The notes beneath the pieces were generated by a model. That model had not been told where the DNA came from and did no database searches. It was given only the letters and a program-made list of their open reading frames with translations. A program made the position numbers and the translations under genes. A stretch of DNA of 64,000 nt. Source: Trichosphaerium sp. ATCC 40318 (lineage: Eukaryota > Protista > Tubulinea). This document shows positions 1 through 63,885 of the stretch, one piece after another. The stretch is from contig JALMLS010000220.1 in assembly GCA_038496445.1 (NCBI GenBank), positions 150,223-214,222 of the forward strand, given 5' to 3'. How positions within the stretch are numbered: the stretch's first letter is position 1; the number at the start of each line of letters is the position of its first letter.

Positions 1-2661
1 GTGCACCAGCACGTACATTATTAGTAAGAAAACGGAAATTAAACCTTCCTATTCGTGATCATCGTAAACCTACATCTCCACGTTCTGGCATGAAACTTTT
101 AAGTTTCCGTAAAAACTCGGTACGTTTTCTCTTGAAATTTGTTTATTTGATTGTTATTTATGACTTGTTCTTATCAACAAAGTTGTTCCAAGATTTTTTT
201 TCTCGACTTTTTTTTGATTTTTTTCCGTTGTGTAGGGCAGAAAGCTATCTAGACAAGGTTCATTTTCTACACCACGTGGTATGCGTAGTCGTTTTAAAAA
301 GAAACATAAAAGACCAAGAAGCATAACAGTAGGTAGTGGAGGTATTGTATAAGATCAAAGCAAGAAACTCACTCTTTTTTTTTTCAAAAACAGGACGTTC
401 AAAAACTCTACGAAGACAAAGTTCAAAGTCAAATGTATTTGAGAGATCATGGAATACATTATTTAGACGAAAAGAACCTAAGGGTAGTAGACAAAGGTAT
501 GAAAGAATACGAAACAACCAGTCTGGTTCTAAAACAACTACTTTAGGGAGAGACCAACTACTATTGAAATGTCTGATATTGTACAAGTACGTATTTGTTT
601 ATTCTACACGCAAAATGTGGTTGCAATGTGCTTACTGTTGTTTCTCGTTTAGACTGAGTCTAGAGCTGCTACAATGAGGCACACACACGAGGATAAGAAA
701 CGTTCAAGGAGTTGGCAAGGTTCTTCTAGTATTAGAAGAAAACGTCATCAATCTTCAACGCAACGTTCACGTATGTGGTCGTTATTTCCGTGGTTTATTA
801 ACCAATAAATTAACACGTGATATAGATAGATGGTTGATTACTCCAAAGCATCTTAGATTAGGTGGTGTCCTGGGAACTGGAACTTTTGGTGTTGTCACAA
901 AAGCAAAGTGGAGAGGCAATCCTGTTGCTGGTACGCTCAGACAGGTTTCATAATCCTACGTGTGTCTAATTTTTTGAGTATAGTTAAGCGATTGAAAGCT
1001 ACTGTTGGTGATGAAGATGCTGCATTTAGTAAACTACAAAAGGAAGCATCTATTTTGATGTAAGTAACTTTTCTTTTTCTTCTTTTGTTCTACTTCTGTT
1101 TTCTTATCTTCTTTTGCAGCCAAAGTAGACCTCATGAGAATCTTGTAAGGTTGATAGGTATAGTAAGAGAACCTTTATCAATTGTTCTTGAATATTGTGT
1201 ACACGTACGTTGTGATGTTTTCGTAGAACGAAATCAGGTTAACATGATTTCTTTCTTTTAGGGATCACTGAAGTACTACATCCAAAATAATCCAGTTATT
1301 CCAAAGAAAGTCAGTTCGGATGTTCTTAAAGGAATAGCTGCTGGTATGATACATTTACATGGAGAAGGAATAATACACAGGCGGTTATCTGCAAGGAGTA
1401 TGTGTTAATATCTTTCTTCTTTTTTTCTTACTTTTCTTTTAGATATTCTCGTACGTTCAAAAGTTCAGTACTTGACTTGGCTGAGCTCTAGCCTTGTTTA
1501 TTACATATTGATATACTTTATTTTTTTGGTTATGCTTATTATTTTACTAGTTGTCTTCAGGGCTTGCTGTTAAGATATCAGATTTTGGGTTTAGTTCTCA
1601 TAGCCTTCAAGGAGTAAGAAAGGATTGCAACCAAAAGAATGTTGCATTTAGTCCACTAAAGTGGATGGCTCCTGAAGAGCTTCGAGGTGATCCCTCATCC
1701 CCATCATCAGGTATTTAATTTTTAATCAAGCATGAGTATGCAAGCGTTAAACTTTTTCTGAAGTAAAACAACCTCGCAAAAAGAAAAAAAGTAAACTTGC
1801 AGTTTGAGCTATTTTCTTTACCACTTAGCAACTGGAGTTACTAACGTGTATATAACTAGATGTATGGAGTTTTGGTGTAGTACTTTATGAAATGCTTCTA
1901 AGAAGAAAGCCATACCCACTTCACAGAAGTCCAATGGTACGCCTTGCGTTCATCTTGTTCTTTTGCAATCCAAGTTAACTTTGTGTCTTTTTTTTGAAGG
2001 TTGCTGAATTGGTTTCGCAAGAAAAGCTCAGACCGTATATTCCCCCTAATATACATATCCTTACTGATGTTATGACAAAGTGTCTTTGTTTTAAACAAGA
2101 GGATAGACCAAGTTTTTCTTATATTGCCGAAAGACTTGATCATTTAAATGAATCTGATGTTCCAGAGCATGCTATTATAGAACCTATGAGATCTGGTTCT
2201 TCATCAAGGCCTATATCTGGTAATAGACCTAGAGCAAGTACATTAGGCTCTGGAAGCTCTAAACACAGTCCGGTATGATATTTGTTTTGTTTTGTATTTT
2301 TTTGTTTTATTTTTAAGTCTTGAACAAACTTGAGCGTATAATATAAGTTTGATGGATTAAACACCTCAAAAACTTAGTTTTCGGCTTGTTAAAAAATACG
2401 AGAAACGCTGCACATGTTGGTTTTTGGTTTTTTTAGGGCACACTCCCTGTAAAGAAAAAAAGTTGATTCTGATGTTGTTTTTTTTTTTAGCCTCAAGATG
2501 GTTTTATCAGTGCACGTAGTGCATCTCCTACTTTGGATGATATACTATCCGATCATTCTGCATACTCTGATTTTAGCAGCGACCAGATGATATCATCACG
2601 TTGGAGGAGTGGTGATGACTTGGACTCTTCATTTAGTGATGGCACTTCAACTATGTTTTAA
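1..2661 (+). CDS. Tyrosine-kinase-like (TKL) kinase-domain protein, multi-exon, begins upstream of window; probable pseudokinase
   Basis: Spliced exons give GVLGTGTFGVV (G-loop), VAVK, IIHRRLSARNIL, KISDFG, PLKWMAPE, SDVWSFG and DRPSF; basic low-complexity N-terminus; stop TAA at 2659-2661. Confidence 0.9.
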
Positions 2662-2860
2662 AAAAAATAAATAATAATACTTGTACAAAAATATGATATT
2701 GTGTTTAAATAACATAAAGCTTCTGCAGTGCCATAATAACACTAAGACCGCTACACGAGAACAATGCGTGTTTGCAGTTGTGCTAGTAAGCGCAACCTCT
2801 CGTAATAAGGCTACTCTACAATAATTATACAACTATTTCATCATCTTCTTTTGTTTCTTC

Positions 2861-5800
2861 TTATGTTTCTTCTTTTTGCACTTGTTCTTCAGTTGCAGTG
2901 TTGCATTCGTTGGATGCTGGTGCTTCTTTCGTGGGAGGCTCTTCCACTTGAGGTTCATATATAGGTACTTTAATTCCTAGGAGGGTTAAGGATTAGTTCA
3001 CAGGATTATAGATATCACATGGGTAGCAGTAGTATAATTGTGTACCTCTCTTCTGAGCAATAAATTTAATGCAATCGTTGAATACTTCATTTTGGACTTC
3101 ATTGGGTTTATACGCCAGTAATGATTCGAACACATCTTTAACATTTATGTCGTTTGTAACACAGAATGAACCAAAACCTTCAAGAGCCTAAAAGAAATAT
3201 ATAAGTATGAGAGCCAACAAAAAAGTTCAATTGATGTTTTGTTTGCTGCTTGGATTCACACTCACACGAAAAGTGTTGTAGTGAGTAGTGAATGTATAAT
3301 GGTTCACAGAGCTTCAATTGTAAATCCAATTATTTATCACGTGATAAAAGAATTACAGCGTAAAGTGAACACATAAACAAAAATAAAAGTTACCTTCGCA
3401 AACTCAGGTTTGATAAACGTGTGGTACATTAAAGGTATACCAAGCTCTGAAGCTGCAATATACTGTTGTATTGCCTTAAGTTCCAAGTTGCCTCCTTATA
3501 GTACATTTAAAAAAGTGTTAAGTAAGCGTGAAGTACCAAAAGCGCCACAACCCTACAAAGGAAACAAAATCAGTGATTTGTTCAAAGCCAACAAAAAAAC
3601 CCCCAAGTTTCGTACCCAGTTTCCTGTTGAAGCAATACAATCATCACCAGTGTGATATTCCTCTTTTCTAGATAATCCAACATATGCTTTGTTTATATCA
3701 CGAAGTAACTTTCTGTGAACAACGTAAACGGCTACAAGCTAAACAAAAAACCTTTGGCTTACTCTTTGACGAATTGCATGTTTCCAAAGTTTACTATTGC
3801 ATCAATGCCTGTGCAAGTCAGTAAATAGATAGCTCGTGTAAATAAGTAACCGTACAGAAAATATGATTATCAAGACATCCAAGCGTTGGATTCAATGGAG
3901 TCTTGTCTTCAAATGAATCTAAGAAAAAACTGAGAATTGTTCGTTTGGCTTAGAGTCAAGTACCTTCAAATTTTAAGCTTCGTGCATATCCACTGTATTG
4001 AGAAAACCTCTCAGCACCGCTAATAACTATAGCTTCGTTTTCTTCCATCTTAGGGCAAAGGAGCATAGACTAAAAGAAGGAACTCCATCAGCAAGAAAAG
4101 CAAATTATTAGTTTTCAGAACAGAAAACCTTACAATGTAGCATTCGGGCTTCAATGCAAATAGAATCTCTTCTTGAACGCAACCACCTTTTAGATACGTT
4201 AATGGTAATTATTTGTCATATACAAGGCCTTATAGACATACCATGCAAAGCGCCACCGCCTATGTATTGATTCGCAAAGTCGGCATGAAACTTTGCTGGA
4301 GAATCTTCAATCTTCATCTCATCATCAACTTTAATAGGCAATAATGGCTTTTCACTTGTACTCCAATCAACGAATTTATCACAAACCTGTAAAATAAGGT
4401 AAGAAAAGTAAAAAATGGATTAAAACATGAACGAGGAGAGTTACCTTTCGATGTATTATGATGTTACCAGTAGGCATTTTCTTTTGGCTTTTTTAGCAAG
4501 TTAGATACTCCAACAAACGCCCAAGGCGATAAATAATATTAGATTACGTACATGCGTCTGAAGTATTCCATTATACAAAGTATGATAGACTTTAAATAAA
4601 TCGTAAGAATCTTGCTTTGAGAAGAAAAAAAGACCTTGTTTGAGGTTGTGCTAGTACGTACTTCTGCAGAGTTTGAAAATAGTTTTTCTTTACCAGGAGC
4701 TGAAGCATAGTCTGTTATAAACAACATACCAAAATCACAATCATTGAATCCCAACCCACTAAGCAACATGGTTAGTTTTCGAAAATATCGAGAAAAAAAG
4801 AAGCAAGCAAAACAAAGAAAAGCAATTCATCACAACACGTGCCCATGTATTATATTTGGATTTTCAAATGTACAAAAGAAGTAGTGTGACAATAAGCAAG
4901 CAACCTTGTAGGCGATGGAGTAAGTAAAGGCACAGCGTTATGCAAAAAAAAAGAATCCAGGGGTTTTTTTAGTAACGTACTTGTTCTCTTGTGAGTACAA
5001 CCTTTGCGTCCTTTCCTGGTGGCAAGATTCTTATTTTTTTATCAAATAGCTCATCTATCCTCAATGCCAATTTTTGTATAAATGGTAAGATAACATCAAA
5101 GAATTCATCTTTACAACCGTAAGTACAATTTTCAAATAAATGACGGATAATAAAAAGAAACTAAAAGATGTTGCTCGTCATTGTCCATTTTTACATGGCA
5201 TCAACGTGTTAACTTTGATAGCCATACATTATACCGTGAGAGGGAAAATACACCCAAGCGATATAAAGAGCACTTGGGAAATATGAAGACCAAAAAAACC
5301 GAAATTCAAATTGTACACACCTTTCAATGCCTTTCTATCTGGAGACTCGCAATATTCATCACAGTAGTACGCTCTAAATTTATGATTTAAAAAATGAGAA
5401 TAAAAAGCTGAAATCACGTGTTGATAACCACAAACTTACTTGAAAAAGTTTGCATGATTTTTGCTTGTACCCAGACCATTCAACAATTCATCAAGCTGAT
5501 CAAGTGATGTCACTTTAGCTGATAATAACTCTTTTTGTATCTCCCATTTCTTAATGGACATATGTGGTAAATAAGCATACGTGAAAGCAATACCATCTTG
5601 GTTAACATTAACAACAAACTAATGAATCAAAAAAACCGTTATTTTTTACCTGTAAGTGAAATGATTGCTTTATCAATGTCTTCCTGAAAAACCTTCAAGT
5701 TTGATAATACTTCAACAGGGGAGATATCAATTTTGTACTTGTCGCCAAAGGGTTTGAAGCCTATTTGACGGTATGTGAGGTCTTCCACGGTAACATTTTG

Positions 5801-6178: not shown

Positions 6179-6249
6179 TATTGCTTTGTGTGCTTTGGTA
6201 AGTGACAGCAAGCTTGGCTTATTGTTTGGCTTAAGTCACAGTCACCGAA

Positions 6250-10135: not shown

Positions 10136-10694
10136 CATTACCTTATCAATTGACATTGATATCGTACATACACATGTGAATGAAGATCCTATTATTTTCG
10201 CAAATGCAGTACAATTTAATTATATTTAATCAAACCAAAACAAAAAACAACAATCCCTTTTGGTCCATAGAATAGAGCAATAAATGTAAAGTAGTGTTAT
10301 TATTATACTGTGTAGTTTTTACATTGTTCGCTTGACAAAGAGAGTTATGGTTTCATTACCTCTACATCAGCGCAAACGTCACTTTTCTTTTTGTATTAGG
10401 GAAAAACCCTTTTGAGTAGATTCATAAAATATGAACAACTCTACAATTGTCGGTATAGGATACGCCGTAGCATCACACAAACGTTTTTAGTTTTTTTAAG
10501 TTTTTTTTGCAGTTTTTGCACGTGAAAGCAAGTTGAAAGTACCCGAAATGTTGTATTATTGTTATGTGAAACGTGAAGCATACAACGCATTGTGTATTTC
10601 GTCGAAGTTCAATGATAGTAGCTTCGGGGAAATAGTTGTGTACTCTAGATAACTCTGATTCCTGTATTGCTCACATTACAATAATTCCACTTAA

Positions 10695-12858
10695 CTCCCT
10701 CGCCGTAACAAAAAATTTCCTCGCCGTAACAAAATTTTAACTTCAATTCTGGACCTAAAATATCTTTAAATAATCTGAATTTTTACACGTCGTAGACATT
10801 ATGTTTATCTTGTTATTCTGGATTAGATAGCCACATAGGTGTTTTTGGTGATGTTCTACGGAATGTACAATAAAAGTATCAACTTTTTCTTTGCCATATG
10901 TTTTTGATGTATGTGATAGGGCACAGTATAAATTGTTATGCTTTTATTATATCTAACGTAGTATTGACTAGGTCCAAGGGCTCAACTAGCAAAAAATAGT
11001 TCATTGCATGAAATGAAGGGTCTTTCAACGAATGTTCCAAAAAAAATAAAGAAACAGCATTTCAAAGGCATGCTAGCACAATACACTCTTGAATTTTTTA
11101 TACTACCTACGCAATACAGAGTTGGTTATACAAACGCTTTTAATAGGCATGTACTGCACAAGGTAACCCAAAAATTGTTTGATGAACACTTTATCTTTTC
11201 TACTCTTTAAACGCTTTTGTAGAGCAATGCAAATGAGTTACGTCTAGTATTTGGTACTTTACAGCGTCTATATATGCATGTGCATGTACACAAAACATTA
11301 AATGCATGTAAAGAATATACAGAGACTGAATTATGTATGACAATGCATTGAATCCATGAAAAATGAGCATTTTCAAATATTATTGATTAATCCTTTGGAT
11401 TCAGTGAAAAGTGTCCATTTCTGAGCTGTTTCATTTGCCAGCTATGTTTTCTTTGTACACATCAAACGACAGCAAATTGTAAATATATCGTAAGCATGTA
11501 CACATGTAGTATTAATAGTTAAATTTATTGGTTTTCTGAATATACAGCTAAATTAATCATGTTGATCGCCAAGTTCTCTTATCTTCAAAAAGTTAATTTT
11601 TTTCCCTGTAGCATTGTAATCTATGATAGCTTTCAAGTTAGATAATGTTAATTGTCTTATGATTCTTAAATAGCACTACTGTAACTCCACCCTTTTTAGC
11701 TCCTTTTGCATATTCAACAACCCAGTTTAGAAAGTCAGAATCCATAAACCTGGCATCAAGTACTGCTTGTGGTTTGAATGGATAGTGCTTTTCAAACCTA
11801 GCTAATAAAATCTTAGCAGCATCTAATGGTTTAATCACTGCCACATGTTTAGCATCTCTCCAATGTGGTACCAATCCGAGTAAGTATGGACATTGTTTAT
11901 CTTTGTGTGAATAAACAGCCATTCCATATACCATTAATCCATCTGGATTTGGCTTACCCGAAATATGAACTGTATTTGTATCTTTTTTAGACCACACCAA
12001 CATTGTTCATCAATGGCAATGTACTCTCCTGCAAGCCAAGCCTCCATACATGCATCTGATACCAATTCACACAAATGATGTACATCAGTGCTGATACTTT
12101 GATTCAAAATATTCCATCACAGTGGACTCAAAAAGTCCAGATTACAGTATTTGCTGTTTGTACTCATTTGAGCTAAAAACCCTTCATAACTAATAGAAGC
12201 TAGTACTGTTAATGAAAGAATTTTTTGCTCTTGTTGCACACCAGAAGTTTGGTCTCGTAACCATTGTGTGCCAAAATAACGTAAAATTTCACTAAGTTTA
12301 ATTTCAACGCCCCACATTTGATTTTTTTTTTTGTTAGCTAGGATTTCACGCTTTTGGTTGGTAGCTATCCGAATGTGGTCCCATATGTGTATTGGTATCA
12401 ATTGGGAGTACACTTGCCCAGCTGTACCCATACCTCGTTGAAACACTCCAAGATTAGGCTGAGACACTTGCTCTTCATGTGGCAATGAAATTGTTTCATT
12501 TTTAAGCACAGTCCATCCCTCGCTTTTAATTTCATTTATGCATCGTTCAAATCCACCCAATACCCATTTTTAGAACTGTCGCTTTGTTTCCGCTTCCGTT
12601 TCCGTTGATTTTTTCTTCGAGCTGCTTCTATTTGGTTGTTGTGGGCTTTTACGTTATCACGCAGCGTTTGCTTCATCAGCTAGTGCTATTTAGAGTGTTA
12701 TTGCTTAACCATATTTCAAAAACTACACAAGTTGCTTAAACATAAATTTTATTACTCGGAGTAGATATTAAACAGTGCGCTCATACATCTTAGCCATGTA
12801 ATATGGCATTTGGTACAAAAGTGTTACGGCGAGGAAATTTTTTGTTACGGCGAGGGAG
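10695..12858 (-). mobile_element. Degenerate piggyBac-family DNA transposon (about 2.16 kb)
   Basis: Perfect 37-bp TIRs at 10695-10731 and 12822-12858; TTAA at 10691-10694 and 12860-12863. Fragmented minus-strand transposase with YIAIDEQ, GKPNPDGLMVY, VLDARF and a Cys-rich tail (CSTC). Confidence 0.88.
11128..12680 (-). pseudogene. piggyBac transposase remnant
   Basis: ORF pieces 12117-12560 and 11638-12003 plus further pieces in shifted frames; frameshift directly after the IDE motif near 12003. Confidence 0.8.
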
Positions 12859-13050
12859 CTTAAGCCAACCCTGAACAGAATAGTAACTAAAAAACGAAAG
12901 TGTACGCTCGGATTGGAAGCAACCAATCTCAATTTTTGTACCAATCAAAAATAACCAGAAAAAGAGAATTTGGGGTCTATTTCCACTTTAGACCTCACCG
13001 AACCATTACCACGTGTTCGGACACTATTAATTTCAACAGAGGGAGGTAAA

Positions 13051-18767: not shown

Positions 18768-19733
18768 TTATGAAGCTTCTCCAGCAGCCCTCAATGATAT
18801 CAAGTCCACCTTCGTAGGCACACTAGTGGCGCCAAGGAAAAAGTCGTAGATTACATGATGTTCAATATTCAATGCCGCCTCCTGCAGCTCGTCCAGGAAC
18901 TTGTACCCATCAACTAACGATCTGACTGTTGCAATAGGTACTACAAGCGTTGCATCGTCTGGGTTAATGATCGCAACACGCAATTCATAGGCTGTCAGCA
19001 TCGTTTGACGTTTTTGAAGGACGAAGATATTTTTCCATGTTTTGACCTCGTCTACCCATTTGTATAGCGTCTGGCTCCCTACTCGTTGCCTCTCCCGTAG
19101 TTTAAGTGTTGAAGGCTTGAAATTAAACCAGGATGACACTTTTGTTTCGAATACAGCGCTTGGCATCTTGTCTTCTACTACAACTTCGCATTTGCCTTCG
19201 GTTACTGATTCACATAAATCCGTCCATTCTTTTGTTGTAATATCATCCAGAGGGTGTATTTCGTACTCTTTTTTATTCTTTTTGGGCGTCAGGAAAGCGT
19301 AAATTATTTTTCCCGTATTTAAAGTACAGCGGACCAAGAATACAGAGAGGATGGTTGGAACAACTACTGGTGTTACTGCGCACGCTGCTGTCCCAATAGT
19401 GACGGCGGTTGGTACGACAGTTGCGGTGAGGGTTGTAGTAGCTGAGGCACCAACCACACCTACCAATGCTGACGCAACTAGTTTTCCAACGCCATTTAAT
19501 AGTGTTGCGCCTACAGGACTGCTCATAACTCGAGCTACAAGCACTGTCCACACCCATAGCGTCAAAGCCGTTTTTTCTGAGCCGCTAGCTTTGTGTAAAT
19601 TGAGTTCCTTCGATACTCCAGTAATTTCCCCAGCAGCTGATGCGCACGCGTGTGTGAGGGTTACAGGAACAAGCGTTGTTCCTATAGTAACCCAAACAAC
19701 ATCGCCGACCGCTGCGGGTAAAGCAAGGGCCAT
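18768..19733 (-). CDS. Intronless hypothetical protein, 321 aa, hydrophobic A/V/T/G-rich N-terminal half
   Basis: Long uninterrupted ORF in an intron-rich genome; no family recognised. Confidence 0.7.
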   Translation of the reverse strand: MALALPAAVGDVVWVTIGTTLVPVTLTHACASAAGEITGVSKELNLHKASGSEKTALTLWVWTVLVARVMSSPVGATLLNGVGKLVASALVGVVGASATTTLTATVVPTAVTIGTAACAVTPVVVPTILSVFLVRCTLNTGKIIYAFLTPKKNKKEYEIHPLDDITTKEWTDLCESVTEGKCEVVVEDKMPSAVFETKVSSWFNFKPSTLKLRERQRVGSQTLYKWVDEVKTWKNIFVLQKRQTMLTAYELRVAIINPDDATLVVPIATVRSLVDGYKFLDELQEAALNIEHHVIYDFFLGATSVPTKVDLISLRAAGEAS

Positions 19734-19963
19734 AATTCAATAGTTTTCTTCCGAAACGCTTTGTTTGGTAGAATTGCAGTTTAGTTGACTTGACCAACCA
19801 AGTTTTAGGTCACCCTAGTAATATTAGACATACAAAAGGTACGTACTCCGTAAGGCTCAAACGTACTCCGAGCACTTTGTAAGGCGTTTAGCTAAACAAT
19901 GATCGCCTTTTACATTTCTTGTGTTTTTTATTCGTACCAACATAACTGTAGTACGCAATCGCT

Positions 19964-21589
19964 ATGACATCACTTCTCCTGGACGCTCTCCCGGTAGAGA
20001 TTCTAACGATGATCATTGACAATGACGTTGAGAGCTATATTAAATGGCCTGTACTTTGTCGCTACACCGCTTTAACGCGTTTCGATGACTCATTTCGCAA
20101 ATGCGGCGTGTTTAAAACAGCTTGGCGTTCTGGAAGTCTTCGTAAACGTTTTAGCTTCAAAGACGGTAAGCCAGATGGACTTTGCATTTCGTGGTTCGAT
20201 GGCGGTAACGTTTCCGAGCGCGTACTTTACAAAAATGGCCAAAAACACGGGGAGAGTACTCAGTGGTCCAGAACCGGTCAGATGCTTAAACAGGGCTCCT
20301 ACTGTAACGGAAAGCTGCACGGGGACAGTAAAACGTGGACAGTGGAAGGTAAATTAGAGTCAGAAGGAAAATACGAAAACGGTTTGTGTCTCGAGTATTT
20401 GGACACTAAAAAGGGAAGGTTAACAAAGAAATCGTATAAGAACAGCGAACTAGAAAAACGAGTCATCTTTGACGCGAAAACGAACAAAAAATTGTATGAA
20501 CGTACACGTGTTGGCAGTGATTTATTCCAATCTATTAAATATGATAGCGATGGTTTTGTTGTTCGTAAATATACTGAAACAGGGCAAGGTAAGTTTGAAG
20601 GAAAGTATGAAGAGTGGTATACAAAAGATTCCCCGAAAGAACAATTTTTCTATGTTGATGGAAGGAAAGAAGGCGAGTGTAAGGAGTGGTACACAAATGG
20701 ACAAATGAAACTGTTGTTTGGTTGGTCAAACGAGAAATTTGATGGTAGATACGAGTCGTGGTTTATCAATGGTCAACGTAATATTAAAACAACCTACAGC
20801 AACAACAAAAAAGATGGGGAGTATAAACAGTGGTTTGAAGATACCGGAAAATTACAAGAACATAGTTTCTACAAAGACGATAACCTTCATGGTAATTTCA
20901 AGACATGGTACCATAACGGACAAATAAGGAGGAGTTGTTTCTATGTAAATAATTGTCTGGAAGGAGAGGATATTGAATGGCATGATAATGGTATTATTTA
21001 CTCGAAAGGTTTTTCTAAAAATAGGTTAAGAAAAGGAAGATTGATAACTCAATACAGGGATGGTTCTCTCACACAAGAAGAGTTTTATGACGACAACGGG
21101 AGAATTACAGGAGAAAAGAAACGCTGGCATAACAATGGCAAATTAGCTAGTAAGACATTGTACAAGGATGGTGATGCTGTTGGAAAAGTGGTAAGTTGGT
21201 ATGATAACGGACAAGTACAATGTGTTGAATGTTATTCTGATGGTGAGCTAAACGGGTTATTCCAGAGCTATTACAGCGATGGACAGAAATCATGTGAGAT
21301 TTTTTATCATAACGGAACAAGAGGGTGTGTTACACGTTGGTATCCTGACGGTACTATAAAGCATAAAACTTTTAATAGTATAGAATGTATCGATACAAGC
21401 GGAAAAAATGGACCAAAGTATTGTGATGCATGTGAAGAAGTTGAATGTAAAGAGTATCATCAGAATGGCAAAGTGAAGATGGAATACGTTTATTTTAGAG
21501 GGTATAAGAAGAAAGGGAGTATTGTAAGTGAGTATGACGCTGATGGATCATTAATAAGCAAGCAAACTTGGAGATACAGCAATCGTTAA
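19964..21589 (+). CDS. F-box + MORN-variant (YwqK-like) repeat protein
   Basis: N-terminal LLDALPVEILTMII (F-box-like) followed by many GxxxxWYxNGQ repeats; intron-free CDS; probable 5'UTR intron at 19839-19951 (GTACGT...CTGTAG). Confidence 0.85.
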   Translation: MTSLLLDALPVEILTMIIDNDVESYIKWPVLCRYTALTRFDDSFRKCGVFKTAWRSGSLRKRFSFKDGKPDGLCISWFDGGNVSERVLYKNGQKHGESTQWSRTGQMLKQGSYCNGKLHGDSKTWTVEGKLESEGKYENGLCLEYLDTKKGRLTKKSYKNSELEKRVIFDAKTNKKLYERTRVGSDLFQSIKYDSDGFVVRKYTETGQGKFEGKYEEWYTKDSPKEQFFYVDGRKEGECKEWYTNGQMKLLFGWSNEKFDGRYESWFINGQRNIKTTYSNNKKDGEYKQWFEDTGKLQEHSFYKDDNLHGNFKTWYHNGQIRRSCFYVNNCLEGEDIEWHDNGIIYSKGFSKNRLRKGRLITQYRDGSLTQEEFYDDNGRITGEKKRWHNNGKLASKTLYKDGDAVGKVVSWYDNGQVQCVECYSDGELNGLFQSYYSDGQKSCEIFYHNGTRGCVTRWYPDGTIKHKTFNSIECIDTSGKNGPKYCDACEEVECKEYHQNGKVKMEYVYFRGYKKKGSIVSEYDADGSLISKQTWRYSNR

Positions 21590-22193
21590 CTTTTCACTGT
21601 AGACTCAAAAGCCGAAGTTTAAGTCAATTGTTTACACATTAATAAATTAGAATTCTACTGTTACAATGTAATGACCAACAATTGGATATCATTGTACAAC
21701 ATACTTTACTTTAATCATAACAACAGAAATTCAAAAACAATTATGAGACAATGCTTTGACCAGAGAGAGGGGGCAGGGATAATATATATACTACCCTAAA
21801 TTATATTATTTACTAAAACACTACAACTTTGTAAAAGACCACTCACGTTTGGTAGTAAACACGTGACTTTCTACTCTTACCATTACATTAATTAATCAAT
21901 ATTAATATTTCAATCAGATAGCTTGCTGAGTCTCAAAAGGGTTGCCTATACAACAACCCATCTTAAAAGACTAGATTTAGAATTAGCTAAAAATAGCATT
22001 ACTTCAACCCAAATTTTGTTTCATTTTATTGCCTCGTTTAGTAGCAGCAAAATAGCTACAAAGTCCAAAAGAAATATCTAACTCTTTATTGTGATACAGT
22101 GATTGGTATCATCACTAAGCGCTGACTTTAACTCATTTTTCACATTGGCAACGAAATCAGTGAAGCTGACACATACCATGAGACTTGCAGTAG

Positions 22194-23395: not shown

Positions 23396-23402
23396 CGCTT
23401 TA

Positions 23403-23559: not shown

Positions 23560-23943
23560 AATCACGTGATTTCCTACAACAATGCTGTAAAAGAGGTTTC
23601 GCCATTAGACTGTGTTATTTTTCAAAACGAACAGGCTACTTCAATATTTAAACCCATTCTTTGTAGTGCCCTGTACTTACACGTTAACAATGGGCTGTAA
23701 CAAAAATTGGTTCGTGAACAGCTAGCCTTAAAGTAGTTTAGTGTTCTTATAACATTCGTACATTCTCGGTAACATGAGAGATCAGTACGTAATGATAAAC
23801 ATCGAAATAATTTGTTTAAGAGACATAAACAAAGTTTGTTCCGATATACAGGTAACATCAAAATGATTGTTATAACGCTGGCAGTAGCTGAATGTAGTTG
23901 TAATTTTATTTATCTCGACAAAAAACAAAACAAATAATACGTG

Positions 23944-40829: not shown

Positions 40830-42517
40830 ATGGCAGAACCACGAAAAATAAACCATATTGAGGTTAGGAATAGATGTGGAGGCGAAGCTATGAAATGGTT
40901 TGCTGATGAATCCAAGTTTAAAGTTTTTTACACAGACGCATCTAAATCACTTCAACAACAAGTTGTAAATGCTTTTGGCGTTCTTTCAGCTTCAACGAAA
41001 ACAGACCCAGAGTTAAACGCAAAAAAATTGATTGATCCTGATCCATGGGCCGTCTATGCACCTATACACTATAGTCATCGTACTGTAGACTGTTATTCTT
41101 GGGTATGTTAAACGAATTAACGCAAACGAAGGGCCAACTGGTTGTATGTAACTATTAACGGCGTAACGCTTGTTTTAGGTGCCGTGCGAGTTTACAATTG
41201 ACACTAAAAGTATGAGAGTTTGTAAAATATCACACATAGAAGGTATAAGCACTGTACAAAACGTACGTTGTTTCAGTTAAAGCTGGTGCTTGTAAAAAAC
41301 CGTTAAAACCGTTTTTTTTATGGGCAACAGTAAAAAAAAGTTCTTCTCTTCAATACATTGTCTTCGCTTACAGTGCGTCCCTTTTGAGATTTTTCTTTTC
41401 AAACTCACACGGGAGATGAGCGGTCATAGCTTTAAGGACGTTGAGCTTCATGATACTTTTTTTTGTTTTCTGTTTGGACCAAACTAATTCACTTTAGGCT
41501 GATGTGTATGCTGCTATCGCTGCTGCGTTTACTGAGATGATACCACAATTCCAAAGTGCTAATGTCATACCTGAGATACAAGGTCACTCAAGTCTTTTTA
41601 TTTTAGCTTGCAGTACTAACTCGACATAAGATTGTGAGTACATTACACTTCAGGTTATAGTGAAAGCCAAGTCATACAGTATGCCTGCAAATCACGTGCG
41701 TTGTCAAAGAGTTTTTTTCGTAATTTTATTTCTTCACGTGGCTAACACGTGATACTTTAGTCTTATGAAGGGTTCTGGCATGTGGAAGGAACACAAACAG
41801 ACAATATTAAAGGTGTTGGTCTGTATTACTATAATGTCTCATCTAATATTCAAGACTGCGCTTTACGGTTTCGGTATGTTATTCAGTCTCACTTGTTAAC
41901 TAACTAAGATATTCAGGCCGCGTATGGTATCGTATTATTTTGTAGACCCTGTTTATCAAACTAGTGATGACGGTATTGTTACCATAAAAGAAGGCACATG
42001 CATCGCTTTCTCTAATGAAGAATTTGCACACAAGGTGAGTTACGTGCTTTTTTTTGTGTTGTTTTTCGCCCCGTATATTTATTGTATGGCTTAGGCATCT
42101 CTTATGAAGAATGTGAGTTCAACAGAAACGGCAGATAGAGCATATTTAGCGTTCTTTATAATAGATTCAGAAAAACCACAAAAAGATACAACCACATCGC
42201 TTGGACACAGGTCGACAATGTACCATGCTAGATTTCTTTCTCGTCTGTTAGGTACTACTATACAGGTCTAGCACCAATTTATTTATCTAAAGGGTTATCT
42301 AGGATTACCCCTGTTGGTGACATACAGGATATGCGAGTTTGCAAATCTTGGGACAAGCGCTGACTCCAAGAACGATGCTTTAAAATTTTTATCTACAAAG
42401 CGTTCTGAAACAAAAACGAATGTTCTCCAATATTCAGGCGAGAATGCAAGTCCTGGTATGAAAGAAGGTTGGATGGCACGTGATGGAGGTGTTATGACAT
42501 TTTGCTTTTGCTATTAA
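40830..42517 (+). CDS. DUF4246-family protein
   Basis: LQVIVKA, YEGFWHVEG..DNIKGVGLYYY, EGTCIAFSN..FAHK and RAYLAFFIID follow the DUF4246 motif order as I recall it. Confidence 0.72.
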
Positions 42518-42897
42518 TTAACAAATATAATCGTAATGTAATGATAATAAAGATCACAGCTGTACATAGTTTAGAAGCATGAAATGCCTTAAGTTTTTGA
42601 CACGTGTCTCGAACTGACAATCATTATTCCAGAATTAGTATCTAAGTTAGCTAAGGATTATCCAAGATACTCTATCTAGCAGGTAGAAAAGAAGCAATAC
42701 AGCTGAAAAGGAAAAAAGTGCAGAAGAGTCAGCGAGACTAGTTTAGATTTCACAAAGCTTGTCTAGGTAGAAAGTTACAAGTATGGCAAATGCAACCATG
42801 TGTCTTTTTTGATATCATGTGGTCTTATGAGAACAATACAGTAAAATGTTCTCACTTCCGTTTTTTATTTGTATATTTTACAGAAAGTGTTTTTTAC

Positions 42898-44477
42898 CTA
42901 TGCGTCTCCGAAATGTAATCTTTCAAAAAATCTTGACATAACCTTGGAAAAAAATAAGAATGAAAACAAAACAACAAAACATGTGAGAAGTCTTTTTCGT
43001 TACTAAAAACCAAGGTTTATATGAATGTACCTGGAACATTACAAGCAAAATTCCGCCACCAGGTCCTAGCCTTAGTACTTTTGCAAGGTATCCCTTGTAC
43101 AAAGCACGTGCACCTTCCTCCGATGCAACCTTATAGAGGCCAGGAAGAACCCATCTATACGCTGGTTTTCCTTGTTTCACCAGAGCATCTTGGTTCTGTA
43201 TACGTGTTTTTACAACATCAAAAGGTGTATTACATGTTGTACCAGCACTGTAACAAAAGTTTGAGTTGTGGGAATCGCCATAAAAAAAAGAGTACTGAAA
43301 ACAAGTAAGCGTACACGCCAGCAACAAAGCCTGCACAAAAGTCACGAAATAGGAGCTTGGATCTAGAAGAATCCTATACGATTTTTATGGTAAGTAATTC
43401 AGGGTTTCTGAATAAGCAACGTACATCAGGGAGTTTAAATATGGTTGTCTTAAGAAGATGAATAGTGAAAAAGTATGCTCCATTCCAAACACCATTCCTC
43501 CAAAGTGTAGCCTCTAGTCCTTTATAGAAAGCAAATGGACCTTCTTCTGTTAATATCTTGTATGCAGCAACACCAGAGTTCGTGTATTTAGCTTGCTAAG
43601 AAAAATATAAGATGATTGAGCTTAAACTTCTTAAAAATACAAATTGTTGAAAACAACTCTGACAAACTGTCAAGTTCTAACTTCTTTTTACAGTTAAAGT
43701 AGTACTATTTTTGCATACAATTATAAACCGTAACGTCTTTCACGCTAGCGCGAAAAAAAAGCAAAAATGAGTGATTAGAACTGTAAGAAAAAAGAAAGAA
43801 AAACAATTGTCTGAAAACGTTTAAAAAATCATTTTGTCTTTTTCTTCTTCTGTACGTTTTCTTTCGCTTGCATGCGGACTTTTACTAGTTCGAACGGAAC
43901 AATGACAAGCGATTCAGTCATACCTGCACCAGTACCTGCAGCTAGAGCACCAAGAAGAGATAATTTTCCGTTTTTGTCCTAAAAACAGCTTTAGCTTGTT
44001 TGATTTTGATCAAAAGGAGAAATAATATGCCGTACGGAGAACATTGGTTGGTAGGTAGAGTTTGCAGCGAATTTTAGAGCGCGTTTAGGTGCTTCTTGTA
44101 GAATAGGCGGAACAATTCCGCGGTACAACTTTATGGCGCCTTCTTCTTTGATTATAGAGCGAAATACGGTCAATAGGCTTGGGTTGCCAGGGTTGAGTTG
44201 TTGACGCGTTTTTGTAATGTCCAGTGGATACATGATACAGCATTCGATTACGCCTTTGTGTTGTAAGTTTTAGCGCATATGAAGTGTTTAAGAGATATTT
44301 AGCGAGAATGAGCGTAATTTAGCGTAAATTAATAAAACACGATTATACTAGCGATCTTTGGACTGTGTTGGTGTTATTTGATCACTTTTTGTAGAAAACA
44401 TTACCTGCTCCACCACCGGCTAATAGCCTGTAGCCAAAAGGTAATGTGCGCTTCTCTTTATTATTCGTTGTACTCAT
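42898..44477 (-). CDS. Mitochondrial carrier, 2-oxodicarboxylate (ODC/SLC25A21) type
   Basis: Three carrier repeats: YPLDITKTRQQ, VPFELVKVRMQ, TPFDVVKTRIQ; EAPKRALKF, RNGVWNGAYF, RLGPGGGILL. Confidence 0.92.
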
Positions 44478-44762
44478 ATGGCCTGTTTTTATAAACTGGG
44501 AATGTACAACAGAAAATCAATTAAGTTGCCATTCTGCAACTTAACACTGGTACTAAGCTGCTAAAATAATGACATGACAAGCAACACGCATTCACAATAC
44601 TAGTTGACTGTAGTGTATTGCAACTCTTCTTGAACGAATTGACATTGGACATGGATTGGCGCACTTTTGTGAACTATCACTGTCACTTTATTCCACACGT
44701 TTCATTGATACTATAAAATTTTTTATTGTTATTGTGTTGACCAATATCAAACCAATGAGGTT

Positions 44763-45170
44763 CTATTGTTTGAAAGGTGAATAGATAAACGTAGTAGAAA
44801 CGCTCGGCAGTTGAGGTAGAATACTAATACCCAATGACTGAACATATCCCTTTGTTATACGGCTTTCATTGAAGAACATAATGAATTTGAGAGATTTCAG
44901 ATATTGCAAGCAATGGTTTGTTATGTTGTTACAATGAAAAAGAATGAAGTATTCTAGGTTTACCATGTGCTGTAATCCTTTGTTTGTTATCTTTTCGCAA
45001 TCCCACAGTAACAGTTGTTTAAGGTTTGTCATGCACTTGATTCCTTCATCAGTTATACAACTGCTTCCAAAAATAGCAAGGCTTTCAAGATTTACCAAAT
45101 GCCTCAAACTGTCATCTGTTATAATCAAGCGTGTACCCTGTCGTATAGTGAGATATTTAAGACTGTCAAT
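44763..45170 (-). CDS. LRR protein fragment (different repeat subtype); start not resolved
   Basis: Repeats ITDEGIKCMTNLKQLLLWDCEKI; no F-box found upstream. Confidence 0.55.
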   Translation of the reverse strand: MDSLKYLTIRQGTRLIITDDSLRHLVNLESLAIFGSSCITDEGIKCMTNLKQLLLWDCEKITNKGLQHMVNLEYFILFHCNNITNHCLQYLKSLKFIMFFNESRITKGYVQSLGISILPQLPSVSTTFIYSPFKQ

Positions 45171-45913
45171 ATAGAAGGACACAATAGGCAACAACAACAA
45201 TGGTGAGTAGCAACAATGAAAGTGCAATGCAAACACAACACAAACAGAATAATACAAGAATTTTTAGGGAAAAACAAATCCACAAAAGATGTAGGTACCA
45301 AAAACACCCTTAACGGGATTTAAATTCATCCAACACGCGTGAACAGCTGAAAAATGACATAGAACACTGTAAAGATGTGTAAGAGATGATGTATTGAAAA
45401 GATGTAGTGTATGACGTGTAATTTGTGAACTACCACAGTTGTAAAGAACCTAATTTCTATCACTCTTTCACGTGAAAGTAAAAGAAAGAAAATCAAGCTA
45501 TGATGTAAGCTTCCCTTCCCGTGTTTCGACGCTGTCACTACTGTATAAAATGTGTCAAGTGGTGCTAAAAAATAAAAGTCACCATTCTTCAACAAGTGGC
45601 ATTGTAGTACAGCGCCCTATGGTCTCATTGCACATGTTTTTTTTTTTGAAAGTTTTTTTTGTTGAGTAAGGAACAGTTACAGATTTATGTTAAACTCTGG
45701 TACAGGAACGTTATTTGTCCCATTTATGCCACGCTCGTAACAAACAGTTCGTCGTACATGCTTACCAGGGGTATCAGCTCTGTTGAGAGCGGTTTGCATG
45801 ACGCCTTTCCACGTGCTAAAAGAAATTACTATATTAAGAAAACCAGACCGTTAACTTGACTTGACAATATTACTGACGTCAACAACTGCAGACAAATACA
45901 AAAATTGCTAGTA

Positions 45914-47299
45914 ATGAACGTACTGACGCTCTTTATTTTGATTAGTACTATCAGCGCGCTCGCAAATGCTATTCCGGTGCCTTTTGGCACAGCAGTATCC
46001 GTGGGAACGCTTGGACACGAAGAACAAACCGTGTAATGCGCTTTTCTAAACTGATTTTTTCTAAACTGTTCAAATAGCTTCACGCATACTGTGCAAGGTT
46101 CGGATGGTGCTGCTGTCAGTCATTGGTGGATTACAGGACGTACGAACATTAGGAAAATTCTTCTGACTTTTTTTGTTTCAGCCCACGTGAACAATGCCAT
46201 TGTTCGATTTTACATTGATGACAATCCAAGTTTAACTATTGAGCTTATTGCTGACTTCTCCGTTGGCATTGGTTTCGGCGATAGCGAAAGTCCTTGGGGC
46301 ACTCAATTCATTGGAAAAGTACTGACATAAAAACGAACACTTTATTTATAACTGCTATTGTAGGGAGCAAAAGGTGGTGCAGTGTTTAATAGTACGTCTC
46401 TAGTTTGGTTGTTTTCTCCTGCTGATATTCTTGAAGATATCAGGATACCATTTACCTCCTCTCTTCGTGTCTCGGTTCAACAAGCTGCTTCGGATCCGGA
46501 GGGACAATTCTGGTTTATTGTTCGAGGCGCAGAGAACTTGCCTGTGCAAGTTGACGGGTTTAAATTACCTCCAAAGTACGTCACGTGATTTTTTTTTTAT
46601 GGAAGAATTTTCCTAGTAACATTACGTAGTTCTCACCTGAAAGTTTACAAAAATAATGGAACCTACAACCCATTAGAAAAGATAAACCTCGTACAGAGTA
46701 CATCATCGGGATTATTTTTCGCAGTTATGTTGTCTGTACAATCGGAAAACTTGCATTTCCTAGCAGTACGAACACAGTGGTTACCTGTGGGAGTTTTCGT
46801 TAGATACTCATACATTATTGGTAGGGTTGTCTTAGAGCTCATCTTGATGGTAGGCCGAAGATGCTCTTGAGGTAGGACGATGCTTTAAAAAACTTGAAAA
46901 AGCTAATTTGTTCGCTTCAGTTCTGGAACAGAGGATTATTTCGATTCAGCTTACTATTTTAATGGCGGTGGTTTCCATTTGCCAGTATCTGGTCTAACAC
47001 ACATCAATAGAGCAGCAGGTACGCACAGAATAAGAAGTAGTTGTTCTGACTATTGTGGAAGGTCAATCTGAAGTCTCAGCCTACAGATTTCACTACGAAG
47101 ACCCAATTGCTTGGAATAGCAATGGTACTATTGGTATGTAAATGGAGTTGTTATACAGTGACTAAATTTTATTGTAGTATGGAGAAACGGCGATACACTA
47201 GCACCTAATGGTCAGAAATGTATTGACGATGACGGAAAGCCAGCAGCAGCTCCTGCAAAGAGTCAAGTACTATCCTATGCTTATGTTTATGAATGGTAA
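45914..47299 (+). CDS. Secreted DUF2961-family protein
   Basis: Signal peptide; HWWITG, IVRFYIDD, RIPF, SSGTEDYFDSAYYF and SAYRFHYEDPI. Confidence 0.75.
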
Positions 47300-48950: not shown

Positions 48951-50228
48951 ATGTCAAGGATATCTAGCAAGGACACGTACGTATTATCGATAATCGGCCG
49001 CAAGAAGGCGTATTTAACAATTACGTAGCCCAGTGTTAACGCTTATTGACCTACCAATCGAAATAGTGGTTTCAGTACTGGAAATATCCGACAGCCCGCT
49101 TATAATCAATGTAGCGCATACGTGTTCGTATATTTACACTGTTACCCACCGACACGTTGGATATGGAACAATTACGCCTCCTATTGAAGACTACGAACTC
49201 CTAAAAAACAGCCCACTACTTTTAAGAACAAAAATCGTCGTTGATACGCTTGCAGAGAGTGTACAAGTAGAAATGTTAGCTGGCGTCCGTTCAGTTTCAT
49301 TATCTGGATGTAAGAATATAACAGACAAGACAATAGAAGCACTTGCAGGCGTCCATAAGATCTCCCTTCATGGTTGTTCTCAGATAACTGATAAAGCGGT
49401 AAAGGCACTCTCTGGTGCCCATAAGGTGGATCTAAACAAGTGCTACAATATTACAGACGAAGGTCTCAAAGCATTAGCAGGAGTACATACTTTAAGTATT
49501 TGGAAGAACGAGAATATAACATCAAAAGGTATTTCAGTTCTTAAAGGAATACATGAATTAAATCTTTGGGATTGCACTGAAATAGATGATGATGGTATGA
49601 AGGGTATATCTGGTGTACATACTATTGATATTGAAGGTGTCAATAGCACTGATGAAGGTTTAGACGCTTTAAAAGGTGTTTGTACTATTGACATACAAGG
49701 TAATACAAAAATAACTGATCAAGGTCTTTCAGCGCTTTCTGGTGTTCAAGATATTAATCTATCATCTTGCACAAGTATTACCGATAATGGTATACAATAT
49801 CTAGGAGGTGTTAAAAGTATTAATCTGTGTAATATCAAGTGTATCACTGATAAGAGTTTAAAAGCATTAAGTGGTGTAGATAGAATTGAGTTATCAGGTT
49901 GTGATAAAGTTACTGATGAAGGTGTTAAAGCTCTTGCTGGTGTTACATTTATAAACTTGGTTCGTTGCTCTCTTGTAACAGATGAAGGTATTAAAGCTCT
50001 TGCTGGTGTCAAAACTGCTTATTTAAAAAGATGTGTAAAGTTGACTGATGTTGGTATTTCTGCTTTGGCCGGTGTTAGGTGCTTGGTATACAGTTTTGTG
50101 TATTAGTTACAGATAAAGGTGTACGAGCATTGAAGGGTATTAAAGCTTTGTATCTAGAGGGGTGTGATCAGGTATCTAATGAGGCTATTAATAGTCTCAC
50201 AGGTTCAATTTGTAGAAGAAATTTGTGA
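48951..50228 (+). CDS. F-box/LRR protein, paralogue D, with a 1-nt frameshift near the 3' end
   Basis: Exon 1 MSRISSKDT, intron 48977-49028, LIDLPIEIVV; LRRs continue in a shifted frame after about 50085 to TGA at 50228. Confidence 0.85.
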
Positions 50229-50469
50229 AAAAGTAAGTAACAATAAAGCTGCTTTGATTCAAAACAATTAATCAATTTTGTATAAGAATCTTTAAATAAA
50301 AGTCCTCTGAGATACGACAAGTGGCATTAAGGGAGTACTTACGTTGTACAGACATCAAAAGTAGAACACGTGATGATAATGTCGACTGTCATAATGAATG
50401 GTAGTCATGAAACAGTTTGACTTTGAACATGCTTGCAAAGAACGAATTTATATTCAATAAGGTAAGCAC

Positions 50470-51278
50470 ATGTCACAAAACCCAAGAGAAACCGCCGTAA
50501 GTGTTCGAGCAATCGTTTTACCAAAAAGAAAGCAGTAGACATAGAACAGGACATATTCGACCTTGTAGCGCTCCCAGTTGAAGTAATAGTTTATATTCTT
50601 AAATTTGGGACGTTTACACTGCGTTCAGCACAAACCTGCCACCGCATACATGATATCGTACACAAACACGTTGGATATCGTAAAATCAATGTTAAAACTG
50701 AAGACGAAGTTATAATTCTTGACAAGAGTCCGCTACTTCAGAATACAGCTATTTCTTTGCGTAAGTTTAAAGTAAATGACGGTCACTTGCATTTGCTTGC
50801 AGGCGTGCACACTATCGATTTGCACGCTTGTAAAAGAATTACAGATGACGGTATAGAGGCATTGGCTGGTGTGCATCAAATTGATCTTGGTGGTACTAAT
50901 GTTACAGATGAAGGTTTGAAGGCATTAGCAGGAGTACATACAATCATTTTGATGTATTGCGAATCAATAACAGATGAAGGTATTAAGGCACTAGTTGGTG
51001 CACACAAGATTGATTTGGCATCTACCAATGTAACAGATGAAGGTTTAGAAGCGCTAGCTGGCATACACACTATCAGCTTGTATTTCTGTGACTATATAAC
51101 AGATAAAGGCATCAAGGCATTGGCTGGTGTGCATCAGATTGATCTCGGTGGTACTAATGTTACAGATGAAGGTTTGAAGTCATTGGCTGGAGTGCATACC
51201 ATTGAGCTGATGTATTGTGAATTAATAACAGATGAAGGTATTAAAGCGTTGGCAAGTGCCAATACAATTGAATTGTAA
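50470..51278 (+). CDS. F-box/LRR protein, paralogue E (short, internal duplication)
   Basis: Exon 1 MSQNPRETA, intron 50497-50549, LVALPVEVIVYIL; LRRs; decayed repeat remnants follow the stop. Confidence 0.82.
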
Positions 51279-62636: not shown

Positions 62637-62745
62637 AAAGACCTGCAAGGCAACAACACACATTTTTTCGGAAAAAACGAAGGAAACTTTCAGGCGGATT
62701 CAAAAAAAGAAAGCCTCTGTGTTGCCCCACAAAGTGTTTTATTAC

Positions 62746-63885
62746 TTATTTTGGAATACTTTCCAAGTATCCGAATAATGTATTAAAGTATTGTGGATTC
62801 TGACAAGGCACTAATGATGGGTCTTTATCTTGGTAGCATTTTTTGAGGTTTGCAATTTTCATCAATTTTGCGCCTGATACTTCCTCAACTATATAAAAAC
62901 TCTTGTAAATAATAAAAACAAAAACCAACATCTTATAAACTTAGTATAAAGTTTTCAAAGTAAAAAAAAAGTCTACGACGAAGGATCGTTAAAAGAAGAA
63001 AAAAAAAATAGTTGCAGATGCTCGTCAAATCTGCTTTTCTCTCCCCGCGCAGAAACGTAAAATGGTTTTTTTTTGTTTGAAAGACTTTAGGGTTTTTGCA
63101 CACGTGATAAATAATATAATAAATTGGTTCAATTATGTACCTTGAAGTGTTAATGAATCAACATCAACGTCCTTGTGTACAACATACACATCAGCGTATT
63201 CATTATTAATGTATGTTCCATTATTTGTAACAAAGTTGACTTTGACTGTTCCAATCTTATTGAATTCCTTCTCTGGCAAATCTAAACCGAGCTCTTCGTG
63301 TAGCTCTTCTCTTGCTATACATATCAATGTTAGAAAGTCCAACACAATTGCCCAGAAGGAAGAAAAGTCGATTTTTTTCGAATTTCGCTTGAAAGTGGCT
63401 GTACGGCATCAAACCAACGTAAAAAGGTATGGTTGCGCCCGCTTTGTTATGACTAGACGTATTACGCCACTATAACGTGGGTTTCAGGGTTTCTTTTTTT
63501 TTCGAAAAGTAAAAACTTACCTGTTTGCATTGATGTTGATCCAGCCTTCACGTGACCGGCTGCTGAGATGTCCCATAAGTTAGGAAATGATTCTTTGCAA
63601 GCTGCGCGCTTTTGAAGAACTACTTCGCCTTTGCTGCAGCAAAAATGAGTTAACTGAACTTCACAACGCTGTAAGATCGCCTGATACGAGTCATCAGGCT
63701 ACGTTAAAGTCGTTTTACAGCTTTAATGGCGAATGGCACTATTTTGTGTTTATTGCGTACCTGGTAGCGATCCAAACATGCACAACGCGGTGCAATAGCC
63801 CTTTTTTATGCACTTCTGAGCGTGGGAGGCTTTTACCAGTTAAATTACCGTTTTCATCTAATACATCAAGATATTCTTCACTCAT
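62746..63885 (-). CDS. Nudix hydrolase (IDI-like subgroup)
   Basis: YLDVLDENG..PRSEVHKKGLLHRVVHVW, LQKRAACKESFPNLWDISAAGHV and Nudix box AREELHEELGL. Confidence 0.9.

Follow-up and report, generated by a model that had tools for sequence, protein, structure and literature searches.

The palindromic hexamer CACGTG, with the 10-mer ATCACGTGAT as its optimal form, is a true genome-wide iterated palindrome of Trichosphaerium sp. ATCC 40318 (Tubulinea), in excess in every compartment. The excess was noticed in a 64,000-nt stretch of 37% G+C, referred to below as the window (assembly GCA_038496445.1, contig JALMLS010000220.1, positions 150,223–214,222 of the forward strand). Across the 70.3 Mb used for whole-genome word counts, CACGTG occurs 53,777 times, whereas its reversed form, the genome-wide control for each word, occurs 10,418 times; this corresponds to a log ratio of 1.64 (5.2-fold) and a density of 0.77 per kb. 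With unrelated flanks and sites in all compartments, the word behaves as the genome-wide mark that an earlier note on this DNA had proposed. The explanation that we favor, at somewhat less than an even chance, is a balance of mutation and fixation at the word that a dimeric, symmetric DNA-binding protein recognizes; this balance would keep ~54,000 independent copies above expectation.

Abundance, flanks, and spacing of CACGTG

The window contains 47 copies of CACGTG. The earlier note had counted about 45–50, with every named position correct, and its expectation of about 6 from base composition at about 35% GC becomes 7.4 at the computed G+C content. Expectations were 9.8 from 100 dinucleotide-preserving shuffles (largest 17), 13.4 from an order-3 Markov model, and 26 from an order-4 model. 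A 264-kb sample, composed of the window and twenty 10-kb pieces, one from each of the twenty largest contigs, contained 202 sites, and each piece carried 0.4–1.4 per kb; approximately 40 kb of gene loci were examined besides. In this sample, the ratios of observed to expected counts at Markov orders 0 to 4 were 6.1, 4.4, 4.1, 3.3, and 1.8. Ranked by z-score among hexamers, CACGTG came first from order 2 to order 4, whereas at orders 0 and 1 it was third, after the A/T runs. ACGT itself is mildly enriched (1.36). Because the excess persists at orders 3 and 4, it is not explained away by the frequencies of ACGT, CACG, and CGTG; the enrichment thus survives the modeling of ACGT and CpG frequencies, under which, as had been pointed out beforehand, it might have vanished.

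Enrichment rises further with the flanks. Genome-wide, the 8-mer TCACGTGA occurs 8,954 times against 897 for its control (log ratio 2.30, 10-fold), the 8-mer ATCACGTG 11,401 times against about 815 (2.64, 14-fold), and the 10-mer ATCACGTGAT 3,194 times against 72 (3.79, 44-fold). Log enrichment is nearly additive per half-site, with approximately 1 unit gained per AT flank. In pooled half-sites, A is found at position −2 in 46% and T at position −1 in 40%, mirrored on the other side, and the sequence beyond these two flanking positions is unrelated among sites. Since the flanks are unrelated, the copies are not a repeat family. A dispersed repeat or a miniature inverted-repeat transposable element was rejected on the same ground, and internal repeat matches cover only 4.9% of the 264-kb sample.

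The palindrome had also been described as often extended into longer palindromes, and the four examples given are present exactly (Table 1). This description is upheld as regards a symmetric AT flank preference, whereas extension at individual sites is only weakly above chance. At the 202 sites, the left and right flanks were no more complementary to each other, at any of positions 1 to 8, than base preference predicts (all z < 1.6). Extension lengths equaled those of a permuted-flank control, save for extension by five extra pairs, of which there were 3 cases (0.4 expected), with two of them in the window. The double-AT form is 1.32 times as frequent genome-wide as under independent flanks (3,194 versus 2,417), a surplus for which a mixture of AT-rich and coding contexts could be the source. 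The long palindromes represent the extreme end of this symmetric preference at the flanks rather than self-complementarity at individual sites.

Placement is random over short distances. The 257 intervals between CACGTG sites follow an exponential distribution with a coefficient of variation (CV) of 1.06, and close pairs 6–20 bp apart number 8 against 3.1 expected. On contig 1, where the mean spacing of TCACGTGA is 7.7 kb, two stretches lack this 8-mer (104.8–183.2 kb, or 78 kb, and 231–281 kb, or 50 kb), and the density of CACGTG drops to 0.35 per kb at 120–140 kb.

A second palindrome, CCGTACGG, was also enriched in the 264-kb sample and was rejected, since its genome-wide count of 299 versus 393 for the control amounts to no enrichment. 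Runs of this word at 35-bp steps on contig 7 (106.87–106.98 kb) and contig 12 (732.7–733.8 kb) suggest a tandem repeat, and the inflated sample count probably came from the local repeat on contig 7. As a separate observation on the same sample, CpG contexts are asymmetric, with RCGY enriched (GCGC 1.47 and ACGC 1.36, besides ACGT) and YCGR depleted (CCGG 0.41, TCGA 0.55, and CCGA 0.48), and this asymmetry exceeds what CACGTG and GTACGT donors account for.

Distribution among compartments and in young DNA

Compartments were assigned by proxies, namely the longest covering open reading frame (ORF) and donor words, and by one RNA-supported 6-kb stretch (40100–46099), to which contigs of four public runs are ~99% identical. 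These contigs come from four public studies under three organism labels and show few differences, which suggests that several strains or isolates were sequenced. None of the 11 strain differences in this stretch touches a CACGTG site, a sample too small to mean anything. A home-made semi-Markov Viterbi gene finder and two ORF-bridging intron predictors were discarded and are the base of no claim; they recovered at best 7 of the 11 RNA-supported introns, with poor precision, iterative training diverged, and one ORF-bridging predictor was circular for GC donors. A protein word search for relatives yielded none above 65% protein identity, with matches only on 1-kb contigs without usable genomic context.

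When the longest covering ORF is taken as a proxy for constraint, the density of CACGTG decreases with ORF length. Stop-dense DNA, in which this ORF is shorter than 40 codons, carries 1.58 sites per kb (12–17-fold over expectation), followed by 0.8–0.9 per kb at 40–99 codons (4–8-fold), 0.6 per kb at 100–249 codons (3–4-fold), and 0.18 per kb at 250 codons or more (2 sites in 11.2 kb, 1.1–1.5-fold). By the same measure, 8 sites of the window lie in stop-dense DNA (2.4 per kb), 29 under ORFs of 40–99 codons (0.74 per kb), and 10 under ORFs of at least 100 codons (0.47 per kb). In the vicinity of 470 GTAYGT donors, the 40 nt on the upstream side carry 0.43 sites per kb and the 35 nt on the downstream side 0.67 per kb, in both cases several times the expected density, and no position preference relative to these donors was found beyond noise.

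The excess extends to coding sequence, where it is realized through synonymous spellings. In ORFs of at least 100 codons, CACGTG exceeds the expectation from codon usage 2.6–4-fold in all three phases (16 versus 5.2, 22 versus 8.5, and 10 versus 2.5), whereas the reversed word in the same ORFs and phases is not enriched (7 versus 5.2, 12 versus 7.7, and 5 versus 4.0). His-Val dipeptides occur at expectation (69 versus 67.6), but their CAC-GTG spelling is approximately three-fold in excess (16 versus 5.3), with CAT-GTG and CAC-GTA correspondingly reduced. As the spelling is enriched and the dipeptide is not, the force acts on the nucleic acid and not on the protein. Together with RNA contigs that place individual sites in exons, in an intron, and on a splice donor (Table 1), these counts agree with the earlier description of sites in exons, introns, and spacers, and they leave no room for the confinement to promoters that had been named as a possible refutation. 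Nor are the sites placed in the manner of ordinary E-boxes, which would lie in promoters or enhancers of regulated genes.

DNA of recent origin tends to lack the word. A piggyBac-like DNA transposon in the window (2,174 bp, with terminal inverted repeats of ~42 bp) is represented by four full-length copies at 99–100% identity, with terminal-repeat matches that hint at a fifth, and the element is probably still active, judging from these near-identical copies. It has no CACGTG in 2.17 kb, whereas the host DNA that flanks it at four insertion places has 13 sites in 12 kb (1.08 per kb). Similarly, the 11.2 kb of intronless ORFs of at least 250 codons hold 2 sites against ~6.7 expected. The longest of these ORFs, nearly without CACGTG, encode MORN_2-repeat proteins, F-box/LRR paralogues, and a bacterial-type N-acetylmuramoyl-L-alanine amidase, and they may be recent expansions or acquisitions. 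Although these numbers are small, the scarcity in young DNA is consistent with slow build-up in resident DNA. Regarding mobile elements in general, at least 150 reverse-transcriptase matches were recorded on many small contigs, many of them within open frames of 1,000–2,700 codons; the retroelement load is large and the copies are apparently intact.

Possible forces, candidate readers, and rival explanations

An explicit 4,096-state hexamer substitution model was used to compare the possible forces with the counts of neighboring words. In the 264-kb sample, the pooled count of the nine one-letter neighbor classes of CACGTG amounts to 0.97 of that expected at order 1. Neighbors changed at positions 1, 2, and 3 all fall between 0.58 and 1.27 without a trend, and the deamination product CATGTG/CACATG is not depleted (0.82–1.14). 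In the model, CACGTG would rise with its neighbors untouched under any of three forces, namely a bias in fixation, gains boosted along every route, or losses slowed throughout. A Vsr-like boost of the T:G route alone would top out at ~4.2-fold even at 100-fold strength and would lower its neighbor to 0.16–0.40, while an immutable CpG within the word would by itself give at most 1.57-fold. Because the neighbors are undepleted, T:G-only repair of the Vsr type and simple protection from CpG decay are rejected, within the model, as causes. The whole-word bias that would fit the data is S ~1.5–1.8 genome-wide (~1.6 for the core), ~2.5 in unconstrained DNA, and ~3.8 for the 10-mer.

The genome encodes candidate readers of the word. 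Nine basic helix–loop–helix (bHLH) genes were found, four of which have the His-Glu-Arg basic region that specifies CACGTG, and the structures nearest to the best of these four are USF, MITF, and TFEB. Three or four USF/MITF-like class-B bHLH leucine-zipper (bHLH-Zip) proteins are the only identifiable candidates for cognate readers. USF, MITF, and TFEB favor T before and A after the core. As for writers, a multi-exon DNMT1 homologue lies on contig 7 (645.5–646.7 kb) with catalytic motifs and a target-recognition exon that matches DNMT1 structures (E = 2e-17), and a second, divergent C5 cytosine methyltransferase lies on contig 59 (71.5 kb) with one in-frame TAG within the match. The observed-to-expected ratio of CpG in the 264-kb sample is only mildly low, at 0.87. 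A genome search returned no match to a Vsr endonuclease. The exon-by-exon search, in which absence is not proof, revealed, besides the two C5 enzymes, no N4/N6 methylase and no methylase known to be specific for CACGTG, and a search for Tet/JBP gave no match, although its controls were equally silent. The reported preference of mammalian TET for CACGTG (PMC9451156) is a lead only. Of the two kinds of gene that the earlier note had suggested looking for, bHLH genes were found, whereas the exon-by-exon search gave no methyltransferase known to be specific for CACGTG.

These observations point to a symmetric dimeric DNA-binding protein whose energy landscape would comprise a strict 6-bp core and additive, symmetric flanks; random placement, synonymous realization, undepleted neighbors, and scarcity in young DNA argue in the same direction. 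Ordinary point mutations in any one-letter neighbor would generate new copies, which would then persist, or disappear less quickly, under an advantage of S ~1.6 for the core without its flanks; a further ~1 per AT flank would bring ATCACGTGAT to ~3.8. Weakly constrained DNA would reach the highest density, coding DNA could gain the word only via synonymous spellings, and young DNA would not yet have acquired it. Both natural selection for binding, in an architectural or chromatin role, and a drive from repair or gene conversion could be the source of the bias. The protein would most plausibly be of the USF/MITF-like bHLH-Zip type, and that its binding preference shapes the bias is inferred rather than observed. 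Of the origins considered in the earlier note, a structural or chromatin-protein site fits best, given the strict core, the graded, symmetric, and additive flanks, and the cognate bHLH-Zip genes, whereas methylation-linked repair of the known kinds is not supported, given the enzymes that the searches did not find, the neighbor counts, and the model.

Several points weigh against the dimeric-protein explanation. We know of no such excess in other eukaryotes with USF- or Cbf1-type factors, so that something extra would be needed here. The link to bHLH proteins is drawn from motif identity, and G is usual at position −2 of USF and TFEB sites, compared with A here. Over distances of 10–100 kb, the 8-mer is over-dispersed on contig 1 (CV 1.39, with the 78-kb gap), and the contrast with young DNA depends on small numbers such as the 2 sites versus ~6.7. 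Furthermore, the modeled equilibrium frequencies would be alike for selection, conversion drive, all-route directed repair, and whole-word protection.

The main rival is a modification-directed repair ratchet of the kind proposed for the cyanobacterial palindrome HIP1, and we consider it unlikely here. HIP1 (GCGATCGC) and alternate highly iterated palindromes are known from cyanobacteria, and their cause is unexplained (PMC4390886; PMC5861425). In the model of Elhai (2015), the ratchet saturates at ~1 site per kb (PMC4390886). Transferred to CACGTG, a methylase would mark the central CpG, mismatch repair would keep the marked strand, and sites would accumulate to ~1 per kb; the observed 0.77 per kb approaches this level, the genome has genes for a DNMT1 homologue and a divergent C5 methylase, and all-route directed repair is compatible in the model with the neighbor spectrum. 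However, Vsr, N4/N6 methylases, and a CACGTG-specific enzyme were not found in the searches described above, DNMT1 reads only CpG, and a graded AT preference is unexpected for a strict enzyme site. Moreover, eukaryotic mismatch repair is not, to our knowledge, known to use methyl marks. The one-letter deviants of HIP1 concentrate at the first and last positions (PMC4390886), whereas those of CACGTG show no outer-position bias. A further reading, to which we assign a lower probability, is a eukaryotic mark of resident DNA. Nuclear DNA of long residence would bear the ~54,000 copies, whereas young transposons and intronless genes that may have been acquired would lack them, and from this density a dedicated reader, bHLH-like or other, would tell resident from incoming DNA during repair, silencing, or chromatin assembly. 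Such treatment would drive further accumulation of CACGTG and constitute a nuclear counterpart to HIP1, uptake sequences, and Chi.

A role in RNA, in which CACGUG in pre-mRNA would help to define the many tiny introns by pairing of copies or through an RNA-binding protein, is a weaker rival and seems improbable. Under this explanation, CACGTG would accompany transcripts that contain introns. It would accommodate a site on a donor, two sites within one intron, a putative GC-AG intron that begins with GCACGTG, the predominance of GGCACGTG (20 occurrences in the 264-kb sample) over GGTACGTG (7), the near-absence of the word from long intronless ORFs, and the slightly higher density downstream of donors. 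Nonetheless, exons show the excess in all three codon phases, spacing is random without a preferred position relative to donors, a perfect DNA palindrome with symmetric flanks is not required of RNA, and the sites at 23563, 33418, and 38582 lie upstream of intronless F-box genes. We rate as similarly improbable that bound CACGTG is protected as a whole word, being damaged less or repaired better, with losses four to fifteen times slower and gains normal. In the model, slowing every loss to the same extent yields the enrichment and leaves the neighbors undepleted. However, because protection of the CpG alone would yield so little, all six positions would need strong protection, and transcription-factor sites usually mutate more, rather than less, when bound. 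Finally, we regard it as very improbable that the sites are promoter E-boxes of the ordinary kind or copies of a dispersed repeat, or that they follow from base, CpG, or tetranucleotide composition. Some sites do lie 130–290 bp upstream of F-box/LRR genes and ACGT is mildly enriched; the excess at orders 3 and 4, the exon and intron sites, the unrelated flanks, and the low repeat content do not support it.

Window features, known systems, and significance

The features of the window are collected in Table 1. The RNA contigs define a plus-strand gene at 40823–42535, with introns of 43–76 nt and one alternative of 235 nt, and a minus-strand gene at 43104–43978. Both are very intron-dense, with exons of ~80–160 nt and donors that are mostly GTAYGT, and an alternative acceptor gives an intron of either 41263–41330 or 41263–41497. 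The surplus of GGCACGTG over GGTACGTG looks as if the pull of the palindrome turned GT donors into GC donors.

Table 1. Coordinates of CACGTG sites and related features in the window
Feature	Position	Strand	Remarks
CACGTG starts, first part	273, 814, 3338, 4836, 5415, 8853, 10519, 13010, 13457, 13844, 15119, 15584, 17541, 20505, 21860, 23563		
CACGTG starts, second part	25040, 26690, 27391, 33418, 34131, 34756, 34812, 36100, 36539, 36551, 36760, 37753, 38582, 40140, 40635, 41693		
CACGTG starts, third part	41735, 41746, 42477, 42601, 43105, 45469, 45810, 46184, 46582, 50367, 52462, 55732, 55999, 63101, 63549		
16-bp perfect palindrome	3333–3348		Five extra complementary pairs around CACGTG
16-bp perfect palindrome	33413–33428		~130 bp upstream of the start of an F-box/LRR ORF (32116–33288, minus)
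14-bp perfect palindrome	40631–40644		Four extra pairs
14-bp perfect palindrome	45465–45478		Four extra pairs
Site across exon–intron junction (exon ...CAC, intron GTG...)	41693–41698	+	RNA contigs of two runs skip 41696–41760 (GT..AG)
Two sites 11 bp apart in the 65-nt intron 41696–41760, flanking a CTAAC branch-like word	41735–41751	+	RNA contigs
Site in transcribed exon 42300–42535	42477–42482	+	Covered by an RNA contig of one run, no listed difference
Site at exon end of minus-strand gene	43105–43110	-	Contig piece 43104–43247, CT..AC joints nearby
Two sites 12 bp apart	36539–36556		
Two sites, one per end of a putative GC-AG intron (34752–34818) beginning GCACGTG	34756–34817	-	Read from the sequence
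Sole site within a 545-codon intronless MORN-repeat ORF	20505–20510	+	
Sole site within a 439-codon F-box/LRR ORF	37753–37758	-	Codon phase CAC/GTG
Young piggyBac-like transposon	10690–12863		0 CACGTG in 2,174 bp
Stretches with the longest intronless ORFs	18771–23399, 32119–33318, 37034–38350, 49018–51275		

Among known systems, HIP1 is the nearest phenomenon, as had been suggested. Like HIP1, CACGTG is short and palindromic, has CG in its core, and is hyper-abundant, at ~1 per kb, and dispersed in non-coding DNA and in all frames of coding DNA, with unrelated flanks; it is neither a mobile repeat nor a peptide motif, and recently arrived DNA tends to lack it. Unlike HIP1, it occupies a eukaryotic nuclear genome, consists of a 6-bp core with graded flanks instead of a strict 8-mer, shows a lower fold excess (5–44 compared with 15–300), and comes without a cognate sequence-specific methylase in our exon-by-exon search. 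Further traits of HIP1 are the conservation of its sites between related genomes and a long-range periodicity of their density at 10–90 kb (PMC5861425).

With the E-box/G-box of class-B bHLH-Zip factors (USF, MITF/TFE, Cbf1, Pho4, and Myc/Max), the word shares its core, T before and A after, and a genome that encodes His-Glu-Arg factors, the best of them nearest to USF/MITF structures. It differs in being present in ~54,000 copies across exons, introns, and spacers instead of promoters, and we are aware of no comparable genome-wide excess in the yeasts, plants, and animals that carry such factors; literature searches likewise found no published genome-wide CACGTG excess in a eukaryote. CCWGG in enterobacteria, raised through Dcm and Vsr very-short-patch repair, is likewise a methylatable palindrome increased by a DNA-level process without a function at each site; for CACGTG, however, no Vsr was found, the T:G-derived neighbor is undepleted, and this route is limited in the model to ~4-fold. 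Bacterial DNA uptake sequences and Chi are also short words made dense by a process that favors their carriers, and they are scarce in foreign DNA. In contrast to CACGTG, they are asymmetric and tied to transformation or RecBCD, and we neither know of nor found comparable machinery for CACGTG.

Why genomes fill with one short palindrome has been the puzzle of HIP1 for approximately thirty years (PMC5861425; PMC4390886). The eukaryotic case offers a word whose candidate reader class, bHLH-Zip, is one of the DNA-binding folds that are understood best. Neutral controls are built in, in the form of introns and synonymous sites, and sex and recombination are possible drivers. Selection and drive would therefore be separable by population genomics combined with binding assays. 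In practical terms, the bias distorts codon-pair usage and may create GC-AG donors, and within this lineage it could mislead both gene prediction and the analysis of promoters by their motifs.

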